Below are positions 8,877 to 57,168 of a stretch of 64,000 bases of DNA, one piece after another. The notes under the pieces are model-generated. The model was not told the origin of the DNA. It saw only the letters and a program-made list of their open reading frames with translations, and made no database searches. The number at the start of each line of letters is the position of its first letter. Position 1 is the stretch's first letter. The translations under genes were made by a program, and so were the position numbers. Source of the stretch: Andalucia godoyi And28 (Eukaryota > Protista > Jakobida); NCBI GenBank assembly GCA_009859145.1, contig VRVR01000050.1, positions 173,448 through 237,447 of the forward strand. The letters run 5' to 3'.

Positions 8877-8990
8877 TTACGCCTGCATTATACACTGAAC
8901 ATGCAAATCTACGAATAGATATGCATATTCAGTCTTGCATCCCGTCGCCGGGAAGGGGATAGGCACCCAACACGCCTCATGGCATTCTTC
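8877..8990 (-). ncRNA. Putative omegaRNA scaffold of relic C1
   Basis: Hairpins ATGCC/GGCGT, CCCG-GCGA-CGGG (GNRA loop) and CTGAATATGCA-T-ATCTA-TTCG-TAGAT-T-TGCATGTTCAG (UUCG loop); clearly homologous to 57041-57168. Confidence 0.65.
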
Positions 8991-9100
8991 AGATAGATGT
9001 TCCGCGCTCCGTTCTCAATCTCGATCAATCGGTGAGCCACTTTCTCAGCGTGACGCGTTGTTCCTGAGAAGGGTGCATTTGGATGCTGACGGTCCTAGCA
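8877..9100 (-). mobile_element. Internally deleted Fanzor2/TnpB relic C1: N-terminal HTH fused to the RuvC-III end plus an omegaRNA-like region
   Basis: RTVSIQMHPSQEQRVTLRKW (9096-9037; HTH_OrfB_IS605-like) runs directly into ATT GAT CGA GAT [TGAG] AAC GGA GCG CGG AAC ATC TAT CTG AAG = IDRDxNGARNIYLK with a 1-nt insertion (9029-8987). Ends in CAGTGT-N11-GTAA (8897-8877). Confidence 0.8.
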
Positions 9101-9656
9101 GCAGGCGCTTTCGTGTCGTCAGTTGCAGCGATTGATGCACCTGGAGATACGAGATCGTGTCTTGGAAGTTCGCCTCTTGGCAGTGCGCTGAACGAATGAT
9201 AGATGGCTACGCGTAAGCACGAATTCCTGTGAAACAAACGTGCTAGTGTCGGCCAGTATTGACCGTGTGTCTGTTTATGTGTACTTCCATCCGTATGCAT
9301 GACAATGACGTGTCATTATTCATCGGTATAACCCTCCACCCCAAAGGTCTGGTGGACGGCTTTGAATATCATCGGATAGTATGGCTGAAGGTGTGCAGGT
9401 CGAGGCCCAATGAGACGCTGTCGAATATTGAGAGCCGCATTCCTGTAATCGATGATGGCGCTGATACGGATTGTAAACGTCACTTTTTTACGCCAATAAA
9501 AACCTGTGTCTGAGGCGCAGCATCCGAGCCAAATGCTTGGGAAAAGAGGCTTTTGGGTTGGAGGGTATTACCTAATAATGAACGGACTATCAGCCAGCAG
9601 CAGTACGGGAGTTTTATTATTGATTAATGTTTTTTATCGATGCTTGTGTTGGAAGT

Positions 9657-10151
9657 CTAGTTTGCGGATTCGTCGAGGTTTGGAATGTTTGCGAGTCGGA
9701 CTGTGAGATGGGAGGAAGGATGGTGCTTCGTTCCGAATTTTCCTCGAGCGTGGAACTGGACTCTCTTGATATACTCTCCCTTGGTGACGTACGCCTCGAC
9801 GATCTTCAGGTCCTTCTTCTCCTTGTCCGCGCTGGCTGCGGAACGCGAGCCAGCATTAGAGACTGCAGACTGGATTGCAAGCGCCAATGTCTTTGCATGG
9901 CGCTTCGGCGAGTGGTCTAGCTGCGCAAGAGCACTCGGGACAGACATCCCACGAACCATCCGCGCAAGCAAGTTCAGCTTCTTTGGAGATGTCTTCACTC
10001 CGCGGAACACGGCCTGCGACACATACCCAGCAACCCCAGCCCCAGCAGCAGCAGCAGAAGAGGCACCTGACAAGGCCGCTGATGCAGACGACGAGCTTAC
10101 ATTCGACAGCACCGACGATAGCACATCAGACGAGAACAATCGACGAAACAT
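9657..10151 (-). CDS. MRPL22: Mitochondrial ribosomal protein uL22m
   Basis: Bacterial-type L22 motifs (SPKKLNLLARMVRGMSV, AIQSAVSNA, RVQFHARGKFG...SSHLTVRL) with a Ser/Ala-rich presequence. Confidence 0.9.
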   Translation of the reverse strand: MFRRLFSSDVLSSVLSNVSSSSASAALSGASSAAAAGAGVAGYVSQAVFRGVKTSPKKLNLLARMVRGMSVPSALAQLDHSPKRHAKTLALAIQSAVSNAGSRSAASADKEKKDLKIVEAYVTKGEYIKRVQFHARGKFGTKHHPSSHLTVRLANIPNLDESAN

Positions 10152-10425
10152 TCCTCTTTTTCCCTTCTCCTTGTGACCACTATTGCAACCACACCCTCTT
10201 CCTGATTAACTAACTTTTAAAAAATAATAAAAATTAAAAAGCCATAATAAAATGGAAAAAACCAAATTAAATCATATTTATAAAAATCCACTAAACATAC
10301 ACAGAAAGTCCTTTTATTAAATGAGGAATCATTCGAGCACACGTTTGAGAGAGCGAGAGGAAAGCCTTGAGAAAAGAGAGGCAGATGGAGAACAATAGAA
10401 AATGTTTCCGAGTGTATTCATCGAA

Positions 10426-10498
10426 GCCCCTGTAGCTTAGGCGGTAGAGCGCAACACTAGTAATGTTGAGGTCGTCGGTTCGATTCCGACCGGGGGCA
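10426..10498 (+). tRNA. tRNA-Thr(AGT)
   Basis: Cloverleaf: acceptor stem GCCCCTG/CGGGGGC, anticodon arm CAACA-CT-AGT-AA-TGTTG, T arm GTCGG-TTCGATT-CCGAC, discriminator A. Confidence 0.95.
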
Positions 10499-10500
10499 AA

Positions 10501-10507
10501 TTTTTTT
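10501..10507 (+). terminator. Pol III oligo-dT terminator of the tRNA
   Basis: T7 run 3 nt downstream of the tRNA. Confidence 0.7.
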
Positions 10508-10779
10508 CCTTTCCCGGCCCTGCCGCTTTCAACCCCACCTTCTGTAGTGACGAAAGGTCCTATTCTTTCCCGCTCTTTCCATTTATAATGATAATAATTT
10601 CCTCAACTCACAAGTAAGAAACGTTTTTTGTTTTTGCAGAAATAACAAAAATATCAATAGTAATGATATAATCATAATAATCAAAAATCATCATCATCAT
10701 AGTAGTAGTAGTAGTAGTAGTAGCAGTAGTAGTAGTAGTAGCAGTAAGAAATAACTATTTACAAGACAAACTGAGAGGC

Positions 10780-12915
10780 ATGGAGCAGCAGCCAGGAACA
10801 GCACCAGCGCCTGCAGCAGCACACGGAAAGTCGCAGAAGCGAGTCCAAACACGCGGAAGCATGGGCTCGATGATTGCGAAAGCTCGTGAAGCGCTGACTG
10901 CAGTTGCGAATACCGTTGGGATTGCGCTGAGTCCTGTGCCGTACGACCGTTTCTGCGAGCTTGCAGAGTCGGGCGATCCGTACCAGGAGCTGCGGATTTC
11001 GTTTCCTGTCTCGACCGACAATCTCGGGTCGTTTGTCCAGTTTCCACTCGCGGCAGATCGGCAGACACTTGCAATGCTCGACGTAGAGAAGTACTTTGGG
11101 CTCTCGAAAAACACCGGACTGCTCATCGAGTCGCCGGCCCCGCTGGCCCCCGTCCCCAACTCAGATGGCGATGGCGGCAATGGCGAGGACAGCAGCGTGC
11201 GGAAAAGGGCGAGTGTCGCGATTGTTGCGTACCAGTACCTGACACCCGGGTCCACGTACCTGCTCTTTGGGCGCCGGATCGTGGCGAAACCATCGGCGTC
11301 ATCGGTGTCATCGACGGCAGCGGCGGATGAGGAGGACGATGGGTTTGCGCAGAACAGGTGGATGGACGGAATGTGCGTGCAGCGGACCGGGTTTGTAAGC
11401 GACAAGGCAATGGCGCTGCATGCGGGTCCTTCGTATCATCCCGAGCGACCGGACCGCCTGAACTATGTGTTTCGGCATCTTGTGGACTCGGGATGTACGC
11501 AGCTGTTGTGGAGGATTGCGGCGCGGGAAGCATCGGTCGGAGAGCTGGTTGCGGTGCATGATGCTGCGTACGTTGACCAGTTTGTTCGGTCGTCGAAATC
11601 CGAGGGGCTTCTGCAGACGCTTGTGCAGCAGCTTGGATCGTCGGATCTGTATCTCAACAAGAGCTCTCTGCGTGCTGCGAAACTCGCAGCTGGGTGTGCA
11701 GTCCAGGCAGTCGACAGCGTGCTTCTTGGCTCTGTGAAAAATGCATTTGCACTTGTGCGGCCTCCGGGGCATCATGCTGGCAAGCGCACTCCGTCAGGGT
11801 TCTGCTGGTTCTGCAACTGCGCAGTTGCTGCACAGCATGCCTTGTCATGGAAGCCACCCTCTTCTTCGTCTTCTTCGCAGGGCACTGTCCATAGCCCATC
11901 GGTTGCGACTTCGCCCGACATATCTGCACTCAAGCTGACCGATGCATCCTCCAGCCCGCAGTCCAGCTGTACCCCCTCCGCACACGCATTTCCGGACACA
12001 CCAGAGGGCGCCAATATGAGCGTGTCTTCGGTGCAAACGGAGGCGAGCTCCTTGTGCAGCCCAGGATCGATTGGAGGGACTCCCTTGAAACCTGCTGTTG
12101 CGTCGGCGCCCGTGCAGCGCGTGCTCATCGTGGACTGGGACATCCACCACGGCAACGGCATTGAAGAGATTTTTTATGACCGCCGAGATGTAATGTACAT
12201 TTCTGTGCATCGGTACGACGATGGAGCGTTTTATCCAGGCACTGGACATGCGTCGTCGATTGGAGACGGTCCCGGCCGCGGTTTCAACATGAATATTCCG
12301 CTCGGCGGAACCGATATTTCGGATGCTGATTATCTTGCCGTATTCACGCATCTTATTTTGCCTGTTGGGCGTGAATTCGATCCAGATCTTGTGATTGTAG
12401 CAGCAGGATTCGACGCTGCCAAGGGAGACCCACTGGGCAAGTCGTCCGTCTCGCCAGCGTCCTTTGGCATATTCCTAAAGATGCTGATGGAACTCGCGGA
12501 TGGAAAAGTCGTTGCGGTCCTTGAGGGCGGGTACAATTGCAGTGTTGTGGCGCAGTGCGTGGAATCCTGCATCAAGACGCTGGCGGGCGCTGCTGACGGA
12601 ACCGCCTCGAGAACGCTATTGAGGCACGTTTCTCCTTTGCAGCAGTCCAACGGTGGGGATGGGAACGGCAGCGAAGATGGCTCGAGTGCCAAACCTCGGG
12701 TTTCGCAAGTCACGAAGCGTGCCATTCGCACGGTTGCCCAGTTGCTCTCTCCTTTCTGGCCCTGCTTGGATGTACTCTTGCCTCCCAACGACGAAGAAGA
12801 AGCTGCTGCTGCTGCTGATGATGATTCGCAGACAGATACACACGACCCAGCGTCTGGCTCCGAGGCGAGCGTCGATGATGCAGCGGCGAAGTTCGAAACA
12901 CTCTCGTTTCACTGA
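10780..12915 (+). CDS. Class II histone deacetylase (HDA1/HDAC6/10-like)
   Basis: HPERPDRL, RPPGHHA, GFCWFCN, IVDWDIHHGNG, ISVHRY, AGFDAAKGDPLG and LEGGYN motifs all present. Confidence 0.92.
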   Translation: MEQQPGTAPAPAAAHGKSQKRVQTRGSMGSMIAKAREALTAVANTVGIALSPVPYDRFCELAESGDPYQELRISFPVSTDNLGSFVQFPLAADRQTLAMLDVEKYFGLSKNTGLLIESPAPLAPVPNSDGDGGNGEDSSVRKRASVAIVAYQYLTPGSTYLLFGRRIVAKPSASSVSSTAAADEEDDGFAQNRWMDGMCVQRTGFVSDKAMALHAGPSYHPERPDRLNYVFRHLVDSGCTQLLWRIAAREASVGELVAVHDAAYVDQFVRSSKSEGLLQTLVQQLGSSDLYLNKSSLRAAKLAAGCAVQAVDSVLLGSVKNAFALVRPPGHHAGKRTPSGFCWFCNCAVAAQHALSWKPPSSSSSSQGTVHSPSVATSPDISALKLTDASSSPQSSCTPSAHAFPDTPEGANMSVSSVQTEASSLCSPGSIGGTPLKPAVASAPVQRVLIVDWDIHHGNGIEEIFYDRRDVMYISVHRYDDGAFYPGTGHASSIGDGPGRGFNMNIPLGGTDISDADYLAVFTHLILPVGREFDPDLVIVAAGFDAAKGDPLGKSSVSPASFGIFLKMLMELADGKVVAVLEGGYNCSVVAQCVESCIKTLAGAADGTASRTLLRHVSPLQQSNGGDGNGSEDGSSAKPRVSQVTKRAIRTVAQLLSPFWPCLDVLLPPNDEEEAAAAADDDSQTDTHDPASGSEASVDDAAAKFETLSFH

Positions 12916-13377
12916 AGCCCGAGAGGAGCACAAAAAGAAGTAGACCAAACACTGGCGTCCGGTGGAGTTGGTATCAGATCGATATTCGATACACTCTGGA
13001 CATTTTGTGCAGAGCGCAGTCCACGCGTCCGTGCTGCAAAAAAAGAAACAAAACCAAACAAACAAAAACGGGTCGAAGTGGTTTTGCGGCCAGTAACGTG
13101 CGCGGCGGACTCTGCTCTGCGCAGTGCCTCTCGAGCATTGTGTCGCCTGTGACACGGAATGCAACGTGTCGTGGATGCACTGCAGAAGGTCCCCACGGGG
13201 AACCCTCCTGCTGTAAACAACAAAAAACAATAACAATAAAAGCACAGCTAGCGTCAAGCGCAACATTCAAATTTTCAAAAGAACAACACCTTTCGTTTGG
13301 CTTGATGCTAACGAGTCGGGGAATAAGAAACAAACCAATACAACAAACAAAAGCAAAAACAAAAAGCAAAGGGATGA

Positions 13378-15063
13378 ATGGATGCGCGCCATAAAACAGA
13401 CAGTGCAAAAAATTCGGGTGGTTTCAGACCCATCAACAATTCCCGAATCGACCGTATGCATCCTGAATGGGACCGCGCGCTCCAGTCCCATCTCGACGGC
13501 CTCGTCGAAGAGTGCGATGACGAGAAGGAGCATGCGCAGCGGGTATCGGCTGCGCTGTCCTTTCTCCTCGCTGCCTCTTCCCCGTTTGTTTTCTCGTCGC
13601 TAGCATCAACTCCGAACCCGCGGCTAGCATCAATTCCCCTCGACAAGGACTGCGACGAGGACGACGGCGGCGCGGAGAGCGAGGCGCATGTGCACTACCT
13701 CGCGCACTGCTACACCCGCCGCGGCGCCTATCTGGTGCGCGCCCTTGCAGTCCTTCCTCGGGTGGCAGCAGCATCAAGTGATGCTACACGTGCACTGCTG
13801 GTGGATGCTTCTTCGATGATGTCGTGTCCCGGGCTGCCTGCTACTTTACAGTTTGCCCGTCTGTTTCATCCGCACGCAATGACTCTGCTGTACCACCCGT
13901 CCGCGGCCGATATTCTCATGGCTCTTGCGTCGCTCCTCGTGGCCCCTCCACCGCCGCTTCTCGCTCCTCTTGTGTCACCTGCGGCGTGGACGGTGGTGTG
14001 GATCGCGGCGACCGTGGACCGACACGTCTCGACGCATGCGCTGTCGCTGCATCCTGCATCGGCGTCGACGGAAGAAGCGGCTGGGGCTGGGGCTGGGGCT
14101 GGGGCGGGGGGTCGAGGGCGTGGACGGGCAATGGGGAAGGAGGGCGAGATGCTCTGGGTCGTGGGCGACTTGATGCCGTTTGCCCGTCGCGGAATGCCAA
14201 TGCTCGTTGTGCTTTCCACTCCGCTTTCCTCGGATCCGGTCTCGCTGACGCGTTCTTACAGCGATACCTGCTGCAATGACACGCGCAATTTCAATGACGC
14301 CGACAGCTACAACGCGCACAGCCAAGGTGGAGGTTTACGTGATGGCGCTGGCGGTAATGAAGATCGTGATGGGGGAGTGAGACGGACGAGAAGGAAAGAC
14401 GCAGAAGCAGCTGACGAGTGCTGCATGGTATGCATCCATGGCCCCGGCGATCTCTTTCCGGTCTTTCTGTCCAGTCCCTCACTCGCCCTCTCTCTCGTTC
14501 TCGATCCTCTTCACCACTCTTCTTCTACTCAATCCCAACCGCAGCACCGCAGACAGACGAAACGAGAGAGGGAGTCGCTCGAAGAAGTGCTCGAGGCCGA
14601 GCTTGAGCGTGTAGGCGCGTCGCTGGTGGTGCACTCTGAGCGCCACGTTTTAGACGCAGAGACGCAGGGCGTTGTTCGGGTGCTCCGTGGAGGCGGAACT
14701 GCATCCAGAGTGCTGTTGCGTGCGCTTTTCGCGGTGGCGTTTGCAAATGCTCATCGCGAACTGCGACGCTCCGTCATGCGGCTGCCGCATTCTCGATGGG
14801 GCATCACTGTCATTCACCATCACGATCCCACGTCCTCTTTCTCCTCCGCTACCACCGCTACCACCGTTATCTGCGCCTGCGCCTGCGCCTCCATCTCAAC
14901 ACCCGCCGCCACTACTTCCACGAGTTCTGCTAAGAGCAGGGGCAATGGTTCTTCGTTTTCGCTTGACGGGATGGAAAGGAAGCGATGGATCGAAGATCGA
15001 TTTGCGACGGCCGTTGATCTCGTGGTGGCCCACTTCCACGCGTCCGATCAGTTTGTCTTTTGA
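13378..15063 (+). CDS. Divergent SCAI-like protein
   Basis: LYHPSAADILMALASLL, GDLMPFARRGMPMLVV and GDLFPVFLSSPSLAL resemble three conserved SCAI blocks in the right order; low-complexity insertions between them. Confidence 0.5.
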   Translation: MDARHKTDSAKNSGGFRPINNSRIDRMHPEWDRALQSHLDGLVEECDDEKEHAQRVSAALSFLLAASSPFVFSSLASTPNPRLASIPLDKDCDEDDGGAESEAHVHYLAHCYTRRGAYLVRALAVLPRVAAASSDATRALLVDASSMMSCPGLPATLQFARLFHPHAMTLLYHPSAADILMALASLLVAPPPPLLAPLVSPAAWTVVWIAATVDRHVSTHALSLHPASASTEEAAGAGAGAGAGGRGRGRAMGKEGEMLWVVGDLMPFARRGMPMLVVLSTPLSSDPVSLTRSYSDTCCNDTRNFNDADSYNAHSQGGGLRDGAGGNEDRDGGVRRTRRKDAEAADECCMVCIHGPGDLFPVFLSSPSLALSLVLDPLHHSSSTQSQPQHRRQTKRERESLEEVLEAELERVGASLVVHSERHVLDAETQGVVRVLRGGGTASRVLLRALFAVAFANAHRELRRSVMRLPHSRWGITVIHHHDPTSSFSSATTATTVICACACASISTPAATTSTSSAKSRGNGSSFSLDGMERKRWIEDRFATAVDLVVAHFHASDQFVF

Positions 15064-15237
15064 CCCGGTTCCAAGCAAATCGAGCAAACGAAGCATGAAC
15101 GTAGACCGAGTTCATAGTGTTTATTGGTAAATTACTATTGTTCATTTTCATTTTTTGTTTTGTTTTGTTTTGCACTGTATACTTCATTGTCAGTACCTTG
15201 ACTGGCACTCAGAGCCCCCCCCCCCCCCAGATTGGGA

Positions 15238-15753
15238 TCAGTTGACGTCAAAGACAAAGAAGAGGAGAAGAAGGAGCAGGGACACAAGGTATATGGCGGA
15301 GAACACTGCCGAGGTTCTGCGGACCGGCGACGGCGAGCTGAGGCTGAGAAGAACGTTAACGGCTGCAATAGGCGGGAACAGAAATCCCGTACACAGCATA
15401 ATTAACGCAAGCTTACGTTCCTCCGCCGGCGAGCCATCCGTCACATCAAACACCCGAAATGGAAATGGCCCGTCGTCCGGAACCACCGACACTGTCCGAC
15501 GAGGCAGCTTGCGCGTCGTCGAGAGCATATGGCCCAGATCCTGCAGATCGTTCACGGGCATAAACCAAATGTCCCGATACACACTTGCTGTCGCCCGTAG
15601 TGGATGGCTTACACTCCGCTCCCGAACCGTCCCCAACGCCAACGACAACGATGACGATCCCGACCTTGACTCTGACTCTGTCGCTGACTCTGACGTCGAC
15701 GATGAGGACAGCAATGACACTCGTGCGCTGTCACGACTCGGATCCACATACAT
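15238..15753 (-). CDS. Hypothetical protein with a Ser-rich N-terminus and two C-terminal TM helices
   Basis: 171-aa ATG ORF; LIMLCTGFLFPPIAAVNVLL and AVFSAIYLVSLLLLLLFFVF hydrophobic segments. Confidence 0.55.
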   Translation of the reverse strand: MYVDPSRDSARVSLLSSSSTSESATESESRSGSSSLSLALGTVRERSVSHPLRATASVYRDIWFMPVNDLQDLGHMLSTTRKLPRRTVSVVPDDGPFPFRVFDVTDGSPAEERKLALIMLCTGFLFPPIAAVNVLLSLSSPSPVRRTSAVFSAIYLVSLLLLLLFFVFDVN

Positions 15754-15971
15754 TTTTCCCCCTCGTCTCTTTCCAACCCCGAACCTTCAACCTTTTTTCC
15801 TCGCTCCCCTCGACTCCACGCAAAACAATCCCTTTAGTGACCGTGCCAACCGATCACGCAAACCACCGCGAACAATCAAAAAACTAAATAGAAAAAGAGG
15901 ACCCAAAAAAGGAAATCTAGCATCATAGCATCAACTGCCTTCCATCCTCCCTCACCGAAAACGCTTGCATC

Positions 15972-16044
15972 ATGGATGGCGGATGGTGTTGGAACTTTCT
16001 GCTACGATCTCGTGTCTCCAGTGCTCCAACCATCCGTTATCCAT
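15972..16044. other. Long intergenic inverted repeat/hairpin (about 20-bp stem)
   Basis: ATGGAT-GGCGGATGG-TG-TTGGA pairs with TCCAA-CCATCCGTT-ATCCAT; inner TACGA/TCGTG stem. Confidence 0.6.
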
Positions 16045-16186
16045 TCTTTTTCTTTTTGCATTCTCTGCTTTGGTCTGTTCTTTGGAGTTTTTTTAGATAA
16101 TATTTATAAAAAAAGAAAAATAAAAACAAAAGGAAAAGTACAATAATCATTAAAGAAATGAAAAAAGGAAAAGTACTTTTTGAAAA

Positions 16187-18271: not shown

Positions 18272-18459
18272 GGTAAGCGACACTGTCCAATAAAAATAAG
18301 TAAATAAATGAGTACGGCACTGCACAGTGAGCAAAGATATTGGTCAATGCTGATTCATGACGTAAAACATACGCATTTCCACGATTTTCGTTTTCCATCT
18401 TTCCCGAAACCCCAACACACAATCCTCGTGTTTCTCAACAGCAAGAAAACAGCAGAAGA

Positions 18460-19566
18460 ATGACTCGGATACGCAGCCTTCCAGGAGGTCGCAAACCCGA
18501 CAAGAAGCGCCCTAGGAAGGCTTCCAGACCCTCCTTCCGACGTCGCTCGAACGGTGCCTTGGGTAGACATTGAGCGCAAAAGGTTGCTTGCGCAGCATCG
18601 ATCTCTGGGACGATGCGTATAACAACTGCGTCTTCCTTTACCAGAAACGCAATGTCCCTGCAAGATCCTGAAAGTTGGATCGACATGTTTTTCCGAACCC
18701 CGACTCCAGGCTGACGAAGAACACGAGACGTTGTCCGAAATGCTTCGTCGTGAAACCGCGAGACAAGCATTCCGATCATCGCAGCTTCAAGGTTCCCAAG
18801 AATGGTGGAAAACCTCCCGTCCAATTGTCGGTCGAGGAAGGTGCTGCTTTCTGGTCCACTTTCATTCCCGGAAGCACCATCAAATTGTGGAAATGAGGAA
18901 GGAAGGCGGAGCATGAAATTCGACGGCTACGTGAGAAACCCCAAGGTGGTAGTAGCGGCTCGGTTTTCAATGTCCTGCGCACGTGTTCCATTTCCTGTGT
19001 CCAAGGACGATGCTTTTCCGATTGTCCCAGTCGCGCGATCCATGGCACCACCCAAGGCGAAAACCGGAGACATGGTTGTCATGAACAGCTGCGATGGCGG
19101 AGGCCGTGTCTTCCAGACTGTTTATGATGGCTGTTGGAATTACAAGGAATATGAGTTCTCCGAGGGCGACCCTTGACGCTGATCAAACCCCAGAAACGCT
19201 ATCAGAAATTGCAATCGAAACGCGCCACCGAGACGACTTGCATGTCGAAAACGGCAAGACGGAATGCCCGGCGTAAGATGCGCAACATTTCGCACCGCAT
19301 TCAGAACATGCAACATGATGGGCATGTACGCACTGCCAAGGCGGTGTGCCAGAATGCGGATCATATCCTGTTCCCGCCATTGAACACCCAGAAGATGTGC
19401 CAGAAACAGAGTGAAGACGTCACAGTGTCCACACGCGGGATACACGTATTCGCAACCTCGTGACCAGCATGGTGCGAGAAACGTTGCGATCTTGGGTGTG
19501 GAGTGTATTGGAGACTCCATTGGAGTCTGCCAACACCCAAGCCCCTTTTCATCCTCCTCGCAATAA
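18460..19566 (+). pseudogene. Frameshifted Fanzor2 (IS607-TnpB-like) RNA-guided nuclease pseudogene, relic C2
   Basis: In order across frames: basic N-terminus (KPDKKRPRK); ERKRLLAQ/DAYNNCV; RuvC-I-like CDGGGRVFQTVYDG (Asp 19093); KLQSK...RRKMRNISHRIQNMQHDGHVRTAKAVCQNADHILFPPLNTQKM; then CPHAGY..PRDQHGARNVAILG (RuvC-III Asp 19462). The segment between RuvC-II and the last Zn-finger half is deleted. Confidence 0.85.
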
Positions 19567-19767
19567 GGGGGAGGTGTTTGCGTGGGACTGAAAACACCCA
19601 ACAACATACTTGTTATGGGAAGCCCTGAACCATTTTCATGGAAAAGGGAGCAGCTTCGCCACAACGTCTCCAGTTGGCGACTTTGAGACTGCAATTGGAC
19701 CCTCCGGTTTCCATGCGCAGTTTTGAAACTCGTTATCGTTGTTGATCAGTGCTTAACCAAGCGGTAA
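19490..19767 (+). ncRNA. Putative omegaRNA/right-end region of relic C2
   Basis: Consecutive hairpins (TTGGGTG...CACCCAA enclosing AGACTCC/GGAGTCT; CCTCCTC/GGGGAGG; CCCA-ACAA/TTGT-TGGG; TCGCCA/TGGCGA; ACTGC/GCAGT). Ends in CAGTGC-N11-GTAA (19747-19767). Confidence 0.55.
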
Positions 19768-20027
19768 AAACCATGTTTTATATCTTGCAGGTTCCTGCTG
19801 TAGTCCTGTCCGAAAACCTCTTGTCTCAACCCGTTGATGCTCCATTGCCATGTGGCAAAGAGCAATCGAATGAAAATTTTAGATAAGGGAAACCTCGAAC
19901 TCCGTTTCATTTAATGCGTATTTTTCCTTTCGTTCCTTCTGTCTTTCTTTTTTTGGTTTTTCTCCACCATCTTTTTTGGGGCGTTTTAGTCGATAAAGAA
20001 AAGGTTGTGGGATTTTCTTCCTTGCGA

Positions 20028-39480: not shown

Positions 39481-39708
39481 AAATTTCATTGTCAAAACCC
39501 CAATATACTCGACCGGGCAACACAACGGTGCACACTCTGGAACCGCAAAGACCCGGGAAACGGGGGGTGGGTGCACACCAGCTCTTCAGAGAAGGGCTGT
39601 CGGTGCTCAGTGGAAGACGCTGAGCGCAGCGTCCGTGCGTTCCTGCAACCACGGACCTGTGACCCACTTCGGAAACGTCAAAAGAGTCAGTGTTTTGGCC
39701 GGCTGTAA
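39481..39708 (+). mobile_element. Decayed Fanzor/TnpB 3' end plus omegaRNA-like region, relic C5
   Basis: KFHCQNPNILDR, then a 1-nt shift to HNGA; K and GC fall at the same offsets (+9, +16/17) as in relic C1. Hairpins CCCG/CGGG, GGTG/CACC, CAGCTCTTC/GAAGGGCTG and GACGCTG/CAGCGTC. Ends in CAGTGT-N11-GTAA (39688-39708). Confidence 0.6.
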
Positions 39709-39801
39709 AAAAACAAAAAGAACAAAAAGCTTATGTTCGCTGTGTCACCTGTCAGTCCGAGTCATTGAAATGGCAAGCAGTGACATTTTATATTTCTGTT
39801 T

Positions 39802-44670: not shown

Positions 44671-44671
44671 C

Positions 44672-46568: not shown

Positions 46569-46599
<31 letters not shown>

Positions 46600-47811: not shown

Positions 47812-47814
47812 AGC

Positions 47815-47900
<86 letters not shown>
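47812..47900 (+). repeat. (GA)n microsatellite
   Basis: About 44 dinucleotide units ending immediately before the dynamin ATG. Confidence 0.95.
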
Positions 47901-47903
<3 letters not shown>

Positions 47904-50108: not shown

Positions 50109-50346
50109 CGAACCAGCCATTTTTGAAGTGAAAGTTTCGGGAGAAACAACAACAACAACAGCAACAAACAAAAAGAAAAACAAAGAAACAAACAAAAAAC
50201 CACATGCTACATTAAGTCGACAACAACACCAGCCCTTTGTGACTATGTTTGTTTTCCTATCCATACGACGTCGGAACAATCGTGTCACTTTACAACTTAA
50301 AAAGAAGAAATGTATGTACATGGGCAGTCCAGGATGGGCGACGTAG

Positions 50347-50772
50347 CTATCTGTGCTTCGGACGCTTCGGTGCACGTTGCTCTGGAGATGCGAGTTCCGC
50401 GGACCCACCACCACCACCACTACCACTACCAGGAACAGCAGGGGCAACAACGATCTTCTTTTCTTTTGTGGCCTTAATTTTTGCAGCATACTGCCTTACG
50501 TTCCCAATGTCTGCCATCACTTGATCAACGGGTTCATCCTCCAACCTTTTCTGGATAAATCGCAATCCACTGACTGCAAATGCAAACGTAAATGCAAGCT
50601 CTGCTCGGTCGATGGGGTCCGACACATCCTTGATAATCTCCGGCCATGTTTGCTCATTGACACGCCCAAACAACGTCTCCAACACGGATACCGAATCAGA
50701 AATCTGCTTCAGATCCTCCAACGCTGTTGTCATTTCCACACCAAGTCCTGCAACGCTAGCAGTAGCAACCAT
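50347..50772 (-). CDS. C1D: C1D/Rrp47 (Sas10/Utp3/C1D family) exosome cofactor
   Basis: DPIDRAELAFTFAFAVSGLRFIQKRL...DIGNVRQYAAKIK with a basic C-terminal tail; alternative ATG at 50733. Confidence 0.7.
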   Translation of the reverse strand: MVATASVAGLGVEMTTALEDLKQISDSVSVLETLFGRVNEQTWPEIIKDVSDPIDRAELAFTFAFAVSGLRFIQKRLEDEPVDQVMADIGNVRQYAAKIKATKEKKIVVAPAVPGSGSGGGGGSAELASPEQRAPKRPKHR

Positions 50773-50896
50773 AACAGTAGCAGTACAAAGACGAATAATA
50801 ATAATAACAATAATGACAAATAAATAAAAGGAGACGCATAGCAAATCACCGATCAACGAAAACGATCCGCGGAAAAAAAAGGGGCCTGTGAGCCGT

Positions 50897-51598
50897 CTAC
50901 GACGGGCGAATTTTCAAGAGGGATCGCAGAGGAGCGCACCAGCACGGCTCGGAGTGAGGGGCGGCGACTTCCAACTTTTCCGCGACTCGGTCCAGCTTTC
51001 TGCTAGCAACAGCGTCGTGCAGTCCTGGAAAAAGCGAGTCAGCATCCAGTCCCTTGAGGCACTTCGCCAGCAGCGCGCAGTGCGGCAATCCGCAGTCGAA
51101 GAGAACTTGGAGAGCGCTTTCGTACTGCTCGGACGCACACAGCGCAGTGACCAAGAGCTCGGCCACAGAGTCGGTCACCTTTCCCCTGTCTAAATCACGA
51201 GTCAGCGACGAAAGCACTGCGATTCCCTTGGATGGCTCGCCGAGGTTTCGAATGCACACCGCCGCAAGCGACTGCAGAGTCGACCGTAGATGGCTCGGAT
51301 ACGGCCGTTCGAACGAGTGAATGCGTGCCTCGCATTTTTGGGCCACAATCGCGTACTGGCCATGTGCATACAGCAAATCAATCTCCATCGAGAGCCGCTT
51401 GTGCGCTGGAATGTCCAAGGCGCTCCATGACTCGTATCCATCTGCCGTATCCAAAACGCACAATGCCACACGGTTCGACGGGGCAGAAGCAACAGTCCTT
51501 CCAGTCGCAGTCCCGGCGTTCATGTCCGCCGGTCCCACGAACTCCGCAACATCACAAAAGAAATCGGACCCATCAAAGCTGCTGCAAGACATTTCCAT
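50897..51598 (-). CDS. Hypothetical helical (TPR-like) protein
   Basis: 233-aa ORF from ATG 51598; LYAHGQYAIVAQKC and ALCASEQYESALQVL look TPR-like. Confidence 0.6.
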   Translation of the reverse strand: MEMSCSSFDGSDFFCDVAEFVGPADMNAGTATGRTVASAPSNRVALCVLDTADGYESWSALDIPAHKRLSMEIDLLYAHGQYAIVAQKCEARIHSFERPYPSHLRSTLQSLAAVCIRNLGEPSKGIAVLSSLTRDLDRGKVTDSVAELLVTALCASEQYESALQVLFDCGLPHCALLAKCLKGLDADSLFPGLHDAVASRKLDRVAEKLEVAAPHSEPCWCAPLRSLLKIRPS

Positions 51599-51741
51599 CC
51601 TTACCAGCAAGCTAGTATACGCTGCAACAACGTACAAATGTTTCTCTTTTCGGTTTCCAAAAGAAAAAAAATTAAAAGTATCGCCGTCCAACGGATGGTG
51701 CTTTCCTCTACCTTCTACAGTACTTGACCCTCCTTTCCGCG

Positions 51742-51795
51742 GTTTCCGAGTTTTCCGAGTTTTCCGAGTTTTCCGAGTTTTCCGAGTTTTCCGAG
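51742..51795 (+). repeat. 9-bp tandem repeat (TTTTCCGAG) x6 in a divergent promoter
   Basis: Six near-perfect direct units with no spacers. Confidence 0.95.
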
Positions 51796-51881
51796 AATCG
51801 GGTTCTGAGCTCAGACAGCGAGTTCACGACGTTCATGTCTTTCGCTCATCGCTCTCCCTTCACCGTCTTTGTCATCGAGTC

Positions 51882-52979
51882 ATGTTGGCACCAGAGTCAG
51901 TAACGTCCGTTGGACTGAGAATATCGCAGCGTCTTGGGTTTCCGGTCGCTTCTCGCCGATGTTTCTTCTTGTTTTTCGGCGTGCTGCTGGCTGTGCTGTT
52001 CATTTCGGTTCTGCAATCCACAACCACCACCAATTCTCAGTCGCGCAGCCTCAATCTCAGTCGAGCGTTTCCAGCGCAAGCGTCGCTCAAAGGTAGAAAA
52101 CACGCATTCTTCACAATGATTTTCTCCGACGAGTATGCAGCCGGTGCTGCAACCTTGGGTCTTTCTCTGCGACGGCTGATTGCGGATGCCAGTCGTCTGC
52201 AAAATTCGTTCGTTTCTTATTCGAAAGCATCCTCGGAACGGAGCTTACCGCCTTGCCCGGATTGTTCAATGACGGAGCGAGGACTCATTGAGTATGAAAT
52301 GATGTGCATGGTTACCGGTGACGTCACGGTCGAGGCCAGAACACAGCTCTCTTCTCTCGGCTGGAAAATCGCGGTTGTCGATAACATTGAGAATCCATTC
52401 AAAGACCAAATTGCAGGAATGCTACGGAAGGAGTGGAAAAGTACGTACACAAAGCTTCACATGTGGAAATTCGAAATGTACCAGCACGCTGTGTTTCTGG
52501 ACGCCGATACGATGCTTGTTGGCGGCGGTACCAATTCCAGCAATAATCTGGATGTCCTGTCTCTTTTTTCGTACCCCGAGATTGCAATGGCTTCGGACTG
52601 CTGTGACAAATTCAATTCCGGAGTGATTGTGTTCTCACCGTCCGTCAAGACCTTTGATCGAATGCTGAAGTCTATGACCTCCACAGCTTTCAAGTCTTAT
52701 GATGGCGGTGATCAAGGGTTCCTCAATGAGTTTTTTAAAGGCGAGGTGTTCCGGCTACCGTTTCGATTTAATGCGGAGCAGCGGGTGCTTGTCGCAAATC
52801 CGCATGCTTTCGTTCCTGAAGATTTGCGAATCATCCACTTCACATACGACAAGCCTTGGAGGACACTCGCAGAAAAAGTTCCCCAGGCAGCCCGTCAATT
52901 TCACGACGCGTGGAAAGATCTGTATGCAGAAGTGTCGATCAAGGCGCCCATCTCTGCAGCAAATGTAAACCTGTTATGA
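51882..52979 (+). CDS. Type II membrane glycosyltransferase family 8 (glycogenin-like)
   Basis: N-terminal signal-anchor; YTKLHMW, FLDADT (DxD), FNSGVIVFSPS, GGDQGFLN, IIHFTYDKPW. Confidence 0.9.
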   Translation: MLAPESVTSVGLRISQRLGFPVASRRCFFLFFGVLLAVLFISVLQSTTTTNSQSRSLNLSRAFPAQASLKGRKHAFFTMIFSDEYAAGAATLGLSLRRLIADASRLQNSFVSYSKASSERSLPPCPDCSMTERGLIEYEMMCMVTGDVTVEARTQLSSLGWKIAVVDNIENPFKDQIAGMLRKEWKSTYTKLHMWKFEMYQHAVFLDADTMLVGGGTNSSNNLDVLSLFSYPEIAMASDCCDKFNSGVIVFSPSVKTFDRMLKSMTSTAFKSYDGGDQGFLNEFFKGEVFRLPFRFNAEQRVLVANPHAFVPEDLRIIHFTYDKPWRTLAEKVPQAARQFHDAWKDLYAEVSIKAPISAANVNLL

Positions 52980-53095
52980 CGATGATTGAGAAAAGTTTAT
53001 CGAATGGCTATTTTCCCCAGCTCTTGTTTCCCTTCCCCTCTGGTTTCTTTTCTTCTCTTTTTTCCTCTTCCACTTCCACTTCCTCTTCCACCTTT

Positions 53096-56000
53096 TTACC
53101 TCTTATATACAACGGACTGTTGGAATGACGTGAGCTGCGACGCGTCAACCGACTCGGCAATCAGGGTTCGAAACGCAGGCGTCGCAGTCAACGTCTCCTT
53201 GAACTGCGCACTCGGGAGCCGAAGGATGACATCGACGCATCGCGGCTTGCATTTTTCAAGACACTTCAGAAAACCGGTCCAGAGCGGCGGCTGCGTCCAG
53301 ATTTGTCGATCGATCAAACGAAACATGATGGAAAGACATACGTCCACCAGCGACGGGTACCGATCCAAGGCCATGATCATCGTTCGCATAAACAAAATCG
53401 GAATCCGAGGAAATTCTGCCATACGTTGCAAAGATGTTGCAATGGACTTCTCCGTAAAGAAGTTTCTAAATCCAAGACACCGATTCACAAAATCCATTTG
53501 CAGACGGACAATGCCATCTTCTGCAATACCCGAGTCCGGAAAATGAGACATGGAAAGGGAATGCCCAAGAACGAGGACGTCGGACGCATAGATGCCTGAA
53601 GAAGCAGACGCCAACACGCGCTGAACAGCCATTTCAAACGTTCCCGCCTTCATCAGCAGCAGTCGCGGCAGAGATTCTGTAACGACCGCCTTCGGAATCG
53701 CTGCATAGCCCAACACAGGTAGCAAAATATCTACACCGTACTTTCGATATGCGTAAGCATCCCGAACCGCTTCTGCGATCTTGTTCACCGATTCCACATC
53801 CGCGGCCATCACTGTGCACACAAGATCCAGCAAATGCAAAACAAGAGCCTCGGATCCAGGAAGAGGATCTCGAATGATCCGTACGAATTCTTGACTGCGT
53901 CCAATAACGGTCAATTTTTCTCTGCCGAGCGAATCAAGCCGAGCACGGAAAAATCCCTGAAACTTTGGCAAGGCTGAATAGATGTCAAAGAGTTCAGCCA
54001 ACAAAGAAAGTTGATGCACGAGTATTTCGAAAAACAGTCCTGACTGGCGGATGAAGATGTCTTCCAGGACCACAGGATCCTCCGCCTCTCCGGCGGACTC
54101 CGATGCAAGTCCGCGGAAACTTCGAGTGCCAAATTCTACGATAAAGCTGCGAAAGCGCGGATCTCCAAGCAATTCACGAATCAGAACCGCGATGAGTGTA
54201 TTTCTGTTCAGGAATGAGGAGGCCTCTTCCGCCGATCCCGAACAACAATACGTGAGCAGCCTTTCTATGATATCCAGGCGCAACGGCGTCCGCAAACGGG
54301 CCAACTCGCAGAAATGAAGAACACACATCTCGGAGATGTTCCTTTGCAAGACACATCGCATCAGAGAAGACAAAACGTCGGGCGAAAACCGAACCACCGA
54401 CGACGTAAACACAAACAGGGAGTTCACCCATTGCAGGACGGTCGCTTCCGGAGCGCCAGACAACTGCTTCAAGGCGTGCTCGACAATCGAGGACACGAAG
54501 AAGTCATACAGGCAGAGTCTGTTTCTATCCGAGAGCATTTGGTTTGCAGTGTAAATTGCCAAGCACAAGCTCGTAGCCTCCGTCGAATGGGATGGAAGTG
54601 CTTCTGCGATCAGACGAGAGATCTCAAAAATCCTATTCAACGGAGGGCACGCAACGCCCAGAGAACTCGCATCCGCAGGATCGTGGTACAGCGACCTCAA
54701 TTGAGCAATTTCCAGGTGAACATCGTGCTGCAAATGGACGGCGAGATCGCGTATTAGCACACGCAAAACCCAAACAAATAGTGTCTTCCGCTTGCCGCTT
54801 TTCTTGATCACGTCCTGCGCATCCGCAAATCGAAGCGTGAACTCCGACATCCACTGCTCGTAATGATTCATGCCAGATTCCGCGGAACCATCAATTTTAT
54901 CACCAGCCGAATCTGAAGACAGGTCGTCGGTGGCAATTTGGGCGTGCTGCGTCCGAGGAACATGGGCAGGCACCCGAGGCTTTTCCTCAATTCTACGACT
55001 CACAGATGCCTCATCTTTCATATCAAGAGGATCATCATCCATGACATCCAGAGGTACGGTTGTGGTGAACAACGGTTGCATATACGAAATACCAGAACTA
55101 CTAAACCCTGGGCTACTCATTTGGTTCGAAAGCCGCGGATCCAACGCGGAGTCAACGGTGGAGTTCGCCGACGATGCAGCACCTGCCGTGGGATAGAGCA
55201 TCGTAGATGGGGTGCCAACCGGCAGAGCAGGACAGTACGACGCAAGATTGGAAACAGCATTCACAAACTCCGCGAAAACAGACTGTCCACCGTCGCGCGA
55301 CTTCAAGTGAGACGGCAACGGCTTTAAAGTGGAAAACCGCGTCGTGCAATTCTTGACAACCCGCTCAGCAATCTGCATGGAAGAAAGGCTGCCAACGGGC
55401 GTCGCATACAGTTCTTGGGCGATACCCAGAGCCTGCAGGTGCCCCGGAACTTTTGGTCTCTTCGTGGATTCCCCCAGATGCTCACTTGCCCCCGAAGTAT
55501 CTCGTTTCCTACTCAAGGAAAAGGGATCCACGTCTTGCCGCGAGGAGTCTACGGTACCGGAAAACATGAACCGCCTGCGAATTGCTTGAAATTCATCTAC
55601 TGCATCGACGGCAGCAAACGAGTCTTTGAGGGTGATGAACAAGTTGGACGAAGCCGAAGACGTGATTTCAAAGACCCGCCCAACAACAGATATGAGTGCT
55701 GATCGTGTTGTGTGTCTCATTGATTCACTGGTTGACTTCAGAACGCTGGAATCCCCACCGGAGACAACGGCTACTGTGTAGTCCCGCACAGCGATCAAGC
55801 ACTGCAACACAAGCTCTGTGCTTTCCGTGCACAGCGAGTACGGCGAGCGCACAATCTTGGACAGGACATTCACAACGGCACAGCCAACTGTCACGGACGA
55901 AGGAGTGATCGCTATACCTGCACGCGTATTAATGAGCGTGAACAAGCCGTTCAGCGCGTGTCCGAATTTCGCCACAACCCGTTGTCTCAATGCGACTTCC

Positions 56001-56545
56001 AAATCAGCATCTGAATCTAGCATTGTGATGTTGAACTGAGAGGAGGAAAGAAGTGATTCAAGGAAGCGAATGGAGGACAGTACAAGGCTTTGTTGCTCGG
56101 AAGCAAGTCTCATGATCGACTCGTCAATGAAGACATCCAATGTTTCCAAAATTCCAATAATTCCAGTTCCTTCGGATAGGTGATCCAGAACAAACCTGTA
56201 GATAAACGGCACTATTGTCTGTGCATGAACCAAAACCGACCGAGACACGTGAAACGACGCATCCTTGAGAAACACAACCACCGCTGGCAACAGGTCAGTG
56301 GAAAGACGCGGAAACATTTGCAGCGCAGAAAATACAAGATCAACAACGCATTTTCGAACCGTAACAGATACATCCTGGGAGATTTCAAGAGCAACAAAAG
56401 GGAGAATCGCTGCCGCAGATGATTGAGAGACGGAGCCTGAGAATACGAGATCCCGAATTTGTGAAAGAAGAGCTACCCGTTGATCCTCTGATTGAGACCG
56501 GACTTGCTGAAGAGCGTCCACAAGTTGCTGTGCAGAAGTTTCCAT
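53096..56545 (-). CDS. SYMPK: Symplekin/Pta1 (3'-end processing scaffold)
   Basis: N-terminal HEAT domain; C-terminal PILFMRTMIMALDRYPSL...LIDRQIWTQPPLWTGFLKC...LRLPSAQF. Confidence 0.88.
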   Translation of the reverse strand: METSAQQLVDALQQVRSQSEDQRVALLSQIRDLVFSGSVSQSSAAAILPFVALEISQDVSVTVRKCVVDLVFSALQMFPRLSTDLLPAVVVFLKDASFHVSRSVLVHAQTIVPFIYRFVLDHLSEGTGIIGILETLDVFIDESIMRLASEQQSLVLSSIRFLESLLSSSQFNITMLDSDADLEVALRQRVVAKFGHALNGLFTLINTRAGIAITPSSVTVGCAVVNVLSKIVRSPYSLCTESTELVLQCLIAVRDYTVAVVSGGDSSVLKSTSESMRHTTRSALISVVGRVFEITSSASSNLFITLKDSFAAVDAVDEFQAIRRRFMFSGTVDSSRQDVDPFSLSRKRDTSGASEHLGESTKRPKVPGHLQALGIAQELYATPVGSLSSMQIAERVVKNCTTRFSTLKPLPSHLKSRDGGQSVFAEFVNAVSNLASYCPALPVGTPSTMLYPTAGAASSANSTVDSALDPRLSNQMSSPGFSSSGISYMQPLFTTTVPLDVMDDDPLDMKDEASVSRRIEEKPRVPAHVPRTQHAQIATDDLSSDSAGDKIDGSAESGMNHYEQWMSEFTLRFADAQDVIKKSGKRKTLFVWVLRVLIRDLAVHLQHDVHLEIAQLRSLYHDPADASSLGVACPPLNRIFEISRLIAEALPSHSTEATSLCLAIYTANQMLSDRNRLCLYDFFVSSIVEHALKQLSGAPEATVLQWVNSLFVFTSSVVRFSPDVLSSLMRCVLQRNISEMCVLHFCELARLRTPLRLDIIERLLTYCCSGSAEEASSFLNRNTLIAVLIRELLGDPRFRSFIVEFGTRSFRGLASESAGEAEDPVVLEDIFIRQSGLFFEILVHQLSLLAELFDIYSALPKFQGFFRARLDSLGREKLTVIGRSQEFVRIIRDPLPGSEALVLHLLDLVCTVMAADVESVNKIAEAVRDAYAYRKYGVDILLPVLGYAAIPKAVVTESLPRLLLMKAGTFEMAVQRVLASASSGIYASDVLVLGHSLSMSHFPDSGIAEDGIVRLQMDFVNRCLGFRNFFTEKSIATSLQRMAEFPRIPILFMRTMIMALDRYPSLVDVCLSIMFRLIDRQIWTQPPLWTGFLKCLEKCKPRCVDVILRLPSAQFKETLTATPAFRTLIAESVDASQLTSFQQSVVYKR

Positions 56546-56839
56546 TTCTCGATCCGAGGCTGCTTCGAAAACAAAATATGAAGAAATGGGGAAATCCGCA
56601 GTTGCTACCGGATTTTCTTTTTTAAATCAGGGATACTTTGTTTGCAAACAAAAGGAAGGACTCGAAGAAACATGAAAAAAGAGGAACGAAAACACAAAGC
56701 AAAAGGAAAAGAACGCGGAATGCGCCCTGCAAAAGAAAAGAAAAGAAGGAGGACCGTGCAGAGGTTACGGCAGGCGTACACGCAGTCGTTATGTTTGCTG
56801 CTGCTGTATGTTTGCTGTTGAATATGTTCGCTTAACAAC

Positions 56840-57168
56840 CCAGGGCTCGAGGCTGGTTAGGCGGAATGCCCCCAAAATTGTTCAGATGCTGGGCTGCCAC
56901 AGGGGCGCGTCCATTCCACAGTCTCGCGTCGTGCGGGGCAATCCATGCAAAAGCTCGGAGGAAACAAGGTGTCTGCATGTCCAGCGTGGGAACGCCGGAT
57001 TGATCGCGATTGGAACGGGTGCGCGCAACAACATTTATCTTAAGAACGCCCGCAAGGCGTGTTGGGGCCTACACCCCTTTCCCGTCCATGGCGATATGAC
57101 CGGGCTGCAACATTGAGTACGCATGACTAGCGACGGTTATGCATACTCAGTGTACAACGTAGACGTAA
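56840..57168 (+). mobile_element. Decayed Fanzor2 3' fragment plus omegaRNA-like region, relic C3
   Basis: Across frameshifts: VQMLGCHR, ASCGAIHAK-LGGNKVSACPA, RIDRDWNG-ARN-IYLKNA (Zn finger + RuvC-III). Ends in CAGTGT-N11-GTAA (57148-57168). Confidence 0.85.
57041..57168 (+). ncRNA. Putative omegaRNA scaffold of relic C3
   Basis: ACGCC/GGCGT, GGGG-CCTACA-CCCC, CCCG..GCGA..CGGG and ACATTGAGTA..TACTCAGTGT helices; homologous to C1 with compensatory changes. Confidence 0.65.

Follow-up and report, generated by a model that had tools for sequence, protein, structure and literature searches.

A motif shared by four loci of the jakobid Andalucia godoyi and the probable relics of two Fanzor2 lineages

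It is already established that there are Fanzor2 elements whose 3' non-coding regions are conserved and structured (PMC10530073; PMC11832414; NAR 2023). In ApmFz2, the Fanzor2 of mimivirus with the solved structure 9B0L, the bases G(-3) and C(-2) sit in the pseudoknot of the scaffold (PMC11832414). IS607-type elements recombine at GG, have a right end of CGG, and fold the first flank nucleotide into the scaffold; in ISXfa1 this nucleotide is fixed and is part of the scaffold (Yoon et al., bioRxiv 2023.08.09.552727). In bacteria, palindrome-associated transposable elements (PATEs) lack an open reading frame (ORF) and carry omegaRNAs (Meers et al., bioRxiv 2023.03.14.532601), and Chlamydomonas has 20 stand-alone copies of fRNA (Fanzor RNA; Jiang et al., PMC10530073). 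The concept of a stand-alone omegaRNA that guides in trans is, therefore, already known. Here, the terminal 64 kb of contig VRVR01000050.1 from the jakobid Andalucia godoyi (assembly GCA_009859145.1), referred to as the window, were analyzed. The accession VRVR00000000 belongs to this species (PMC7050145), and no link between A. godoyi or other jakobids and Fanzor was found in the literature searched. Four loci of the window, C1, C2, C5, and C3, carry the motif CAGTGY-N11-GTAA. Our analysis suggests that C1, C2, and C3 are relics of two Fanzor2 (IS607-type TnpB) lineages, which invaded the A. godoyi nuclear genome at some time in the past. That these relics reflect the ordinary decay of such elements is, in our judgment, probable.

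The motif lies at 8877-8897 on the minus strand (C1) and, on the plus strand, at 19747-19767 (C2), 39688-39708 (C5), and 57148-57168 (C3). These are four exact occurrences in the window, compared to 0.13 expected from shuffles. An earlier note on this DNA had placed the motif at these coordinates and had described the four loci as intergenic and rich in hairpins. Each of these descriptions was borne out. All four loci are located between host genes of a compact eukaryotic genome, and all fall in the top 2% when folding stability is ranked over 2,556 segments of 150 nt by GC-adjusted minimum free energy. C5 ranked second, C2 fourth (19451-19600, the end of the ORF), C1 17th, and C3 50th, and the C2 region 19401-19650 is among the most structured of the window.

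The coding part of C2 (18460..19566, plus strand) was identified with phmmer, tblastn, and a viral profile hidden Markov model (HMM) as a full-length pseudogene; the nuclease it once encoded is of a divergent Fanzor2 type, here called the 'RDQH' lineage. An ATG is read exactly where the earlier note had put the start, at 18460 ('MTRIRS...', compared to 'MTRKRT...' in the intact protein P0008). The stop is at 19564-19566, and the frame in between is broken by at least five frame changes as well as in-frame stops. The stop-free piece 19155-19460 matches NCBIfam guided_TnpB (E=6.7e-4) and Pfam OrfB_IS605 (E=4.7e-3; 17.6 bits versus a gathering score of 30.5). A phmmer search with this piece found the intact homologues P0001 (645 aa, E=6e-14) and P0004 (559 aa), both of which score above the gathering score of Pfam PF07282 (TNB zinc ribbon, TnpB/Cas12f) at 38-42 bits versus 26.3. 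Two of the seven phmmer matches, P0002 and P0005, were rejected as false positives; they are long, internally repetitive, and of low complexity, and their matches were driven by a basic 'RRNARRKMRN' stretch. A third intact homologue, P0008 (655 aa), came from a word-index protein search. Searches of this kind for the C2 family were largely swamped by lysine-rich words, and one distant member was recovered. The search for related loci of the C2 family in the metagenome and viral contigs returned no match.

The intact relatives allowed C2 to be placed more precisely. With P0001 as the tblastn query, C2 alone was matched in the window, with E=7.6e-33 over 18603-19454 and a second match over 19426-19524. 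Segments of P0008 are 64-67% identical to C2 by tblastn. The pieces of C2 are colinear with positions 107-514 of the viral Fanzor2 profile and with residues 184-641 of P0001. RuvC-I, RuvC-II, the C4 zinc ribbon, and RuvC-III are retained in the intact relatives (D413, E585, C592/C595/C610/C614, and D621). A profile built from the three relatives has 9B0L (mimivirus L79) as its best solved structure (E=4e-17). Fanzor1 (SpuFz1) was not among the PDB matches of this profile or of the viral protein L042 described below, and so the label Fanzor2 holds for C2. P0001, P0004, and P0008, encoded at the loci L001-L003, form a divergent Fanzor2 subgroup, with RDQH[GS]SR at RuvC-III versus RDxN[AG]AxNI, lysine-rich N-termini, and a conserved right-end box common to them. 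Their genes are found on environmental contigs and are mostly neighbored by ORFans (NADAR, TraB/PrgY-like).

C2, L001, L002, and L003 each contain a single copy of the right-end box, TTGA-N14-AGCGG, on the strand of the gene and 147-202 nt past the stop. In C2, the box occupies 19742-19764, at the end of the 3' non-coding region in which the omegaRNA scaffold would be expected (19567..19764, plus strand). Since AGCGG fits both the CGG end of IS607 elements and the G(-3) and C(-2) of ApmFz2, the C2 element is taken to end at 19764. Its right end has the IS607-type CGG/...AGCGG terminus beside a stem-loop (19742-19764). The right flank TAAAAACCATGTTTTATATC (19765..19784, plus strand) would then be the putative source of the guide; this boundary is derived from the relatives, and the guide role from the biology of Fanzor2 and IS607 (PMC11832414; bioRxiv 2023.08.09.552727). 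With the end at 19764, the GTAA of the motif at C2 would consist of the last G of the element and the first three bases of the flank. At the positions of CAGTG, L001-L003 have CGATG, TAAGA, or TCACA, and at those of GTAA they have GCTA, GTGA, or GAAG.

The left boundary of C2 is less clear. No GGG, which would represent the target-adjacent motif (TAM), is present within 18272-18460. Terminal inverted repeats and a target-site duplication were sought for C2, and the only repeats seen were weak and at chance level; GTAAAAC at 18362 compared with GTAAAAAC at 19764 was not significant. No serine-recombinase TnpA gene is found beside the relics, where the flanking host genes leave no room for one. 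The tnpA gene is also missing from many eukaryotic Fanzor2 elements (PMC3627910). A conserved CCGCU about 190 nt upstream, which could pair with AGCGG in a pseudoknot, was not seen by eye in the four family members. The exact 10-mer TTGATCAGTG occurs at the right end of C2 (19742-19751) and at 44-53 of L003, upstream of the intact P0004 gene. In L003, it is followed by a second near-copy, TTGGTCAGTA, and similar tandem units lie upstream of C2 (TTGGTCAATG and CTGATTCATG) and of L001. It is possible that this lineage carries such units at both of its ends as subterminal binding repeats for a recombinase. As a subterminal repeat, 'TTGATCAGTG' was rejected, since its loose matches occur at the background level of about one per 2 kb; the exact 10-mer common to the C2 right end and the L003 left end is the one match that stands out.

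For the other loci, relatives were obtained by scanning IMG/VR for DNA encoding DRDxNGARNI, which gave 104 stretches, mostly in giant-virus metagenome-assembled genomes (MAGs). The viral ORFs are 450-680 aa long and have C-termini such as 'DRDWNGARNIYLKSFL' (L042) and 'DRDVNGARNIYLKNIGLDESL' (L020). L042 matches ApmFz2 9B0L with E=9e-38. The profile HMM, built from 42 viral Fanzor2 sequences, was run against all 1,887 stop-free pieces of the window. The top ranks were C2 19155-19460 (E=3.6e-14), C3 56861-57040 (E=2.1e-4; zinc ribbon to RD), and C1 8912-9094 (E=6.3e-3; RuvC-III). Rank 4 was also in C1, at 9028-9312 (E=0.16; N-terminal 'IxxxPxxxQxxxLxxW' motif), and all remaining pieces had E values of at least 0.9. 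In addition, 43 viral Fanzor2 proteins were compared to bins of the window by tblastn, with a background median of 1 match per bin and a 95th percentile of 5. C1 had 16 and 18 matches, C2 up to 32, and C3 25 (best E=0.003). C1, C2, and C3 thus stand far above this background. The earlier note had described all four loci as Fanzor2-derived, each with a RuvC-III remnant, and this description held for C2, C3, and C1 and was not confirmed for C5.

C1 (8880..9094, minus strand) is a 3'-terminal relic of a canonical Fanzor2, as indicated by the HMM, the tblastn bins, homology to C3, and spacing. Its coding remnant reads 'IDRD*', then a frameshift, then 'ENGARNIYLKNA', with the RuvC-III D codon at 9026. 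Downstream, a CCCG...CGGG hairpin occupies 8941-8952 and a terminal hairpin of 17 bp occupies 8894-8933, and the tail GTATAATGCAGGCG runs to 8880. C3 (56861..57165, plus strand) is a 3'-terminal relic of the same type, identified by the HMM, PF07282, and tblastn. It reads 'ACPAWERRIDRDWNG', then a frameshift, then 'ARNNIYLKNA', and contains zinc-ribbon and RuvC-III codons (D codon at 57002). Beyond these codons, a CCCG...CGGG hairpin begins at 57078, the terminal hairpin spans 57110-57153, and the tail ACAACGTAGACG reaches to 57165. Among the pieces of the window, this fragment was the sole match to Pfam PF07282 (12.1 bits versus a gathering score of 26.3). Fragments such as those of C3 and C2 are expected to score below the gathering threshold. 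Both relics represent the canonical giant-virus type of Fanzor2, 'DRDWNGARNIYLKN'. Only the zinc-ribbon/RuvC-III end remains in them, with a stop and frameshifts within the last 25 codons. Directly upstream of the C-terminal remnant of C1 is a possible N-terminal Fanzor2 core motif, 'RTVSIQMHPSQEQRVTLRKWL' (9034..9213, minus strand; peptide 9034-9096), with marginal matches to 24 viral queries (best E=0.009) and the HMM match at E=0.16 given above. If this motif is real, an internal deletion, and not a 5' truncation, may have given rise to C1. A further candidate relic at 9418-9576 on the minus strand ('IR*YPPTQKPLFPSIWLG', 'IDYRNAALNIRQ') was rejected as probably due to chance, with tblastn E values of about 3 and no support from the family HMM. 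An intact Fanzor was found neither in the window nor among the annotated proteins reachable by protein searches.

The viral elements were also used to define right ends. Copies of multi-copy elements in viral MAGs cease to align 114-150 nt after the DRD codons and then continue into unrelated flanks. Their ends read ...CTAGTAGCGG, ...CACGTAGCGG, ...ATGTAACGG, ...GCATCGG, ...GGATCGG, or ...CATCTG, and ...GTAGCGG and ...GTAACGG are among the viral termini. A common module, TTTCCCCGTGGAGCTACACACGGG-TTAAAGG-(variable hairpin)-GACTAACGTAGCGG, was recognized, with a distance of 145-158 nt from DRD to the end and covariation in its first hairpin. C1 has a comparable arrangement, CTTCCCGGCGACGGG-ATGCAAG-(17-bp hairpin)-GTATAATGCAGGCG and then TAA, with 147 nt from DRD to the end. 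In C3, it is TTTCCCG...CGGG-CTGCAAC-(hairpin)-ACAACGTAGACG and then TAA, and the distance is 164 nt including 16 nt of insertions. The 7-mer AACGTAG of C3 matches the viral right end ...AACGTAGCGG. The termini of C1 (...GCAGGCG) and C3 (...GTAGACG) are mutated, with GGCG and GACG versus GCGG, and do not match the IS607 end exactly. The DNA profile of C1 and C3 matches viral loci in the coding-derived part only, exactly at the DRD codons. Some giant-virus Fanzor2 elements (L017 4252-4357, L056 99-201, and L106 192-299) have a very short 3' region, in which one perfect hairpin is followed by ...AAAAAGCGG 40-50 nt past the stop, compared to a module of 85-115 nt elsewhere.

The next question is whether the motif belongs to a family. 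C1 and C3 are homologous, with E=8e-20 over about 190 nt in pairwise blastn among the four loci, and a MAFFT alignment extends this to about 240 nt (core identity 77%; overall 69%). C2 and C5 showed no significant pairwise blastn similarity to C1/C3 or to each other. The C1/C3 DNA profile detected no third copy in the window and touched C2 and C5 at the motif only (E of about 50-60), while an nhmmer profile of the C2 family did not link C2 to C1/C3 or to C5 within the window. Every 21-mer of the window was then scored against the full 21-nt end of C1/C3. The C2 site scored 15/21, and 10 other sites in the window were equal or better; the C5 site scored 13/21, as did about 220 window sites. Since C2 and C5 score at background, the motif consists of those positions at which a preselected set of loci happens to match. 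It was absent from the three loci with intact C2 relatives. In 899 kb of Fanzor2-bearing viral DNA it occurred twice, compared to 1.8 expected, and neither occurrence was at a gene end. Nor was it found as a feature of the roughly 100 loci of viral Fanzor2, which have ...(T)AGCGG as their conserved terminus.

In C1 and C3, the 3' strand of the terminal hairpin supplies CAGTG, and the right-end tail supplies the 11 nt. The element finishes with the G, and TAA belongs to the flank. The motif is, thus, located at the right end of C1, C3, and C2, as the earlier note had it, and is not the conserved terminus. The note had also united the four loci into one dispersed class with an exactly spaced motif. 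In place of such a class, we find two Fanzor2 lineages plus C5, and the relatives of neither lineage conserve the motif. A single RNA family for the four loci was rejected after pairwise blastn, nhmmer in both directions, the 21-mer scores, and a covariance model of 12 viral right-end modules linked none of them. Judged from the sequences, C1/C3 and C2 are two different Fanzor2 lineages, and the exact agreement at four sites appears to be mostly the kinship of two copies plus chance, not a family feature. Another possible explanation is that the four loci are a domesticated class of host non-coding RNA with a CAGTGY-N11-GTAA end. The excess of exact matches over expectation, the strong structure of all four loci, and the GTAAAAA extension in three of them would agree with this. 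However, C1/C3, C2, and C5 share no sequence or model similarity besides the motif and have no Rfam match, the motif spans the boundary between element and flank, and C2 is plainly a whole pseudogene. We regard a domesticated class as extremely improbable. The lesson is that a gapped motif common to a few hand-picked loci may be exact and rare and yet not be a family feature, and that relatives from elsewhere fix the true end of the element (...AGCGG).

The decay of two Fanzor2 lineages would explain the loci as follows. C2 would be a complete element whose nuclease gene was ruined by frameshifts and stops and whose 3' part still ends in TTGA-N14-AGCGG. C1 and C3 would be two copies that each cover roughly the final 240 nt of an element from a second lineage, 5'-truncated or, in the case of C1, possibly internally deleted. 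In order, they would consist of the final zinc-ribbon and RuvC-III codons, the hairpins, which would form the 3' part of the omegaRNA scaffold if active, and the mutated right end. The 11-nt spacer of the motif would be the right-end tail AAYGYAGRC, derived from the viral AACGTAGC. C2 would match the motif as its own right-end box happens to hold CAGTG at equal spacing, and C5 would match by chance or for some other reason. Truncated or internally deleted transposon copies account for both the dead ORFs and the hairpin ends. The homologies, the assignment to Fanzor2, the positions of the right ends, and the lack of conservation of the motif are shown by the comparisons above. We infer a former omegaRNA-coding role for the hairpin regions and take the loci to be inert today. 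The closest relatives found are in giant-virus metagenome bins for the C1/C3 type and on environmental contigs for the intact C2 type.

Several observations weigh against this explanation. It rests on 64 kb of A. godoyi sequence. When the 12 viral right-end modules, all AT-rich, were turned into a covariance model, this model recovered none of C1, C3, C2, and C5. Its best matches in the window were AT-rich noise (E of at least 4), and since it misses C1 and C3, their RNA-level homology to viral omegaRNAs relies on layout, spacing, and the 7-mer, with no significant score, and can be called plausible. All 31 pairs of the C1/C3 consensus structure hold in both copies, with three compensatory (double) and eight wobble-compatible changes; this retention comes from two sequences, and 47 of 500 shuffles do equally well. 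When the structure predicted for C1 or C3 by itself was transferred to its counterpart and compared to random substitutions, P was 0.013 for one direction of transfer and 0.084 for the reverse. C5 bears the motif and has an exceptional degree of structure. Finally, C2, C3, and C5 all continue GTAA with AAA to give G-TAAAAA (19764-19772, 57165-57174, and 39704-39714). This extension is present at 10 of the 181 GTAA sites in the window, and the agreement among the three loci is not explained by chance alone.

The pairing in C1 and C3 gives a modest signal that is compatible with selection on the RNA and can equally date from active source elements. The earlier note had proposed that the RNA ends were kept while the ORFs died. 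This was not supported: the RNA-only part of C1 and C3 is 64% identical, compared to 74% for the dead coding part, the termini are mutated, and the window holds no further copy. An RNA-only part that is less conserved than the dead coding part gives no sign of retention by selection. Elements like the PATEs would be expected to show many conserved copies, sharp common boundaries, and a better conserved RNA part, and the two copies here, at 64% versus 74%, do not.

These data bear on the possibility that C1 and C3, perhaps together with C5, represent non-autonomous omegaRNA elements without an ORF, which an intact Fanzor2 elsewhere in the genome would load in trans. The length retained in C1 and C3, about 240 nt, is near the size of a Fanzor2 omegaRNA (247 nt in ApmFz2; PMC11832414), the pairing of their hairpins is preserved, and C1 may fuse the N-terminal motif straight to the C-terminal end. 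The bacterial PATEs and the fRNA copies of Chlamydomonas provide ORF-less precedents. Subtelomeric scaffolds rich in transposon-like and viral-like sequence were, according to the genome paper, omitted from the A. godoyi assembly and could house an intact Fanzor2. However, there are only two copies, 69% identical and with none further in the window; their termini are mutated at the pseudoknot positions of ApmFz2 (G-3, C-2); their RNA-only part is the less conserved one; and no intact Fanzor was seen in the window or among the reachable annotated proteins. We, therefore, consider non-autonomous elements of this kind improbable. The stronger proposal, that C1, C3, and possibly C5 are functional guide-RNA-only loci loaded in trans by a giant-virus-type Fanzor2 from the omitted subtelomeric part or an infecting virus, is more doubtful still, and we give it very little credence. 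If it were true, the shared G-TAAAAA junction would reflect a common target.

C5 (39520..39708, plus strand) lies in a divergent promoter region, forms several hairpins of very high stability (fold z of -3.2), and carries the motif at 39688-39708. It has three hairpins within a closing stem and is located 94 nt upstream of the ATG of a CH-domain gene (39802). No protein remnant was detected in C5 with Pfam, NCBIfam, the 43 tblastn queries (bins at background), or the family HMM, and there was no Rfam match at E<=10 and no match to a DNA profile or covariance model. H/ACA and C/D small nucleolar RNAs and an Sm site were considered by eye and dropped, with no pocket, no boxes, and no proper Sm site. 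On this sequence evidence, C5 is not demonstrably derived from Fanzor. It could still be a fourth Fanzor2 omegaRNA relic, of a third lineage, with a coding remnant decayed past detection. Its fold is the second most stable in the window, its CCCG-GGAAA-CGGG hairpin resembles that of C1, its 3' end combines the motif with an A-rich flank, and some viral right ends also finish in ...CTG. Set against these are the missing matches to any protein, DNA profile, or covariance model, a score against the C1/C3 end (13/21) that about 220 other sites reach, and the absence of DRD codons at the expected 145-165 nt upstream. Such an origin for C5 seems unlikely to us.

As TAA falls outside the element, the AAA shared by C2, C3, and C5 points to an A-rich preference in the insertion site or to intergenic composition. 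The motif, or its G-TAAAAA part, could then be a host signal or an insertion-site preference for A-rich intergenic or poly(A)-site-like DNA and owe nothing to the elements. This would fit with the position of TAA beyond the right end defined from the relatives, with the mutually unrelated flanks of the viral copies and the other flanks of the intact C2 relatives, and with the frequency of A-rich runs in intergenic DNA of A. godoyi. A preference for G-TAAAAA would be drawn from only three independent sites. We view a host signal or site preference as possible but less likely than not.

The surroundings of the loci are those of a host genome. The GC content of the window is about 52%, and both strands are dense in long ORFs for eukaryotic proteins, including histone deacetylase, symplekin, a CH-domain protein, a WD40 protein, acyl-CoA dehydrogenase, and ribosomal L22. 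The ORFs that flank the relics are host genes (FG-GAP, WD40, L22, symplekin, and Mlo-like). An Rfam scan of the window at gathering thresholds gave nothing besides one tRNA; this tRNA-Thr (AGU), at 10426-10498 on the plus strand and about 1.3 kb from C1, is the sole RNA gene found by Rfam or ARAGORN. The most stable GC-adjusted 150-nt fold of the window (59901-60100, minus strand; z=-4.2) lies on the strand opposite a 1,036-aa ORF (59397-62507) and within it. The density of relics, three per 64 kb, may reflect closeness to such an omitted subtelomeric region, as the window ends the contig (64000).

If the decay of two Fanzor2 lineages is the correct explanation, two such lineages are documented in the nuclear DNA of a jakobid and, thereby, of a protist that branches deeply. 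The relatives of the C1/C3 type in giant-virus bins would be a data point for the spread of RNA-guided nucleases from virus to host. The 'RDQH' lineage would be a small new Fanzor2 subgroup with three intact environmental members and a conserved right-end box.

Several described systems can be compared to these loci. Like CMe-1A of Cyanidioschyzon merolae (Bao and Jurka 2013, PMC3627910), the relics are diverged Fanzor copies dispersed between the genes of a small genome with few introns. Unlike the relics, CMe-1A is a Fanzor1 of about 3 kb with about 150 copies, some of which are intact (PMC3627910). As a source of the relics, CMe-1A was rejected on the ground that the assembly is that of A. 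godoyi. C1 and C3 resemble the PATEs and the fRNA copies of Chlamydomonas in that they look ORF-less and have kept the end that encodes the guide RNA. In contrast to those numerous and highly conserved copies, they number two, have diverged from each other, and have damaged termini, and a partner nuclease is not in view. With the IS607 TnpB element ISXfa1 (Yoon et al., bioRxiv 2023.08.09.552727), the relics share the CGG right end and the stem-loop beside the guide. ISXfa1 is, however, bacterial and active and has a TnpA, and its TAM and guide were shown by experiment, whereas the relics are known from sequence. Compared to active Fanzor2 and IS607 elements, all copies here are dead and have no adjoining serine recombinase, and the termini of C1 and C3 are mutated. 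The C2 lineage further differs from canonical Fanzor2 in its RuvC-III, RDQH[GS][AS]R versus RDxN[AG]AxNI, and in its longer 3' region. The greatest likeness is to the Fanzor2 elements of giant viruses and eukaryotes, such as ApmFz2: the protein remnants match this clade best, a 3' hairpin region extends from the RuvC-III codons to ...AGCGG/CGG, and the G(-3) and C(-2) of the C2 box agree with the end of the ApmFz2 scaffold.

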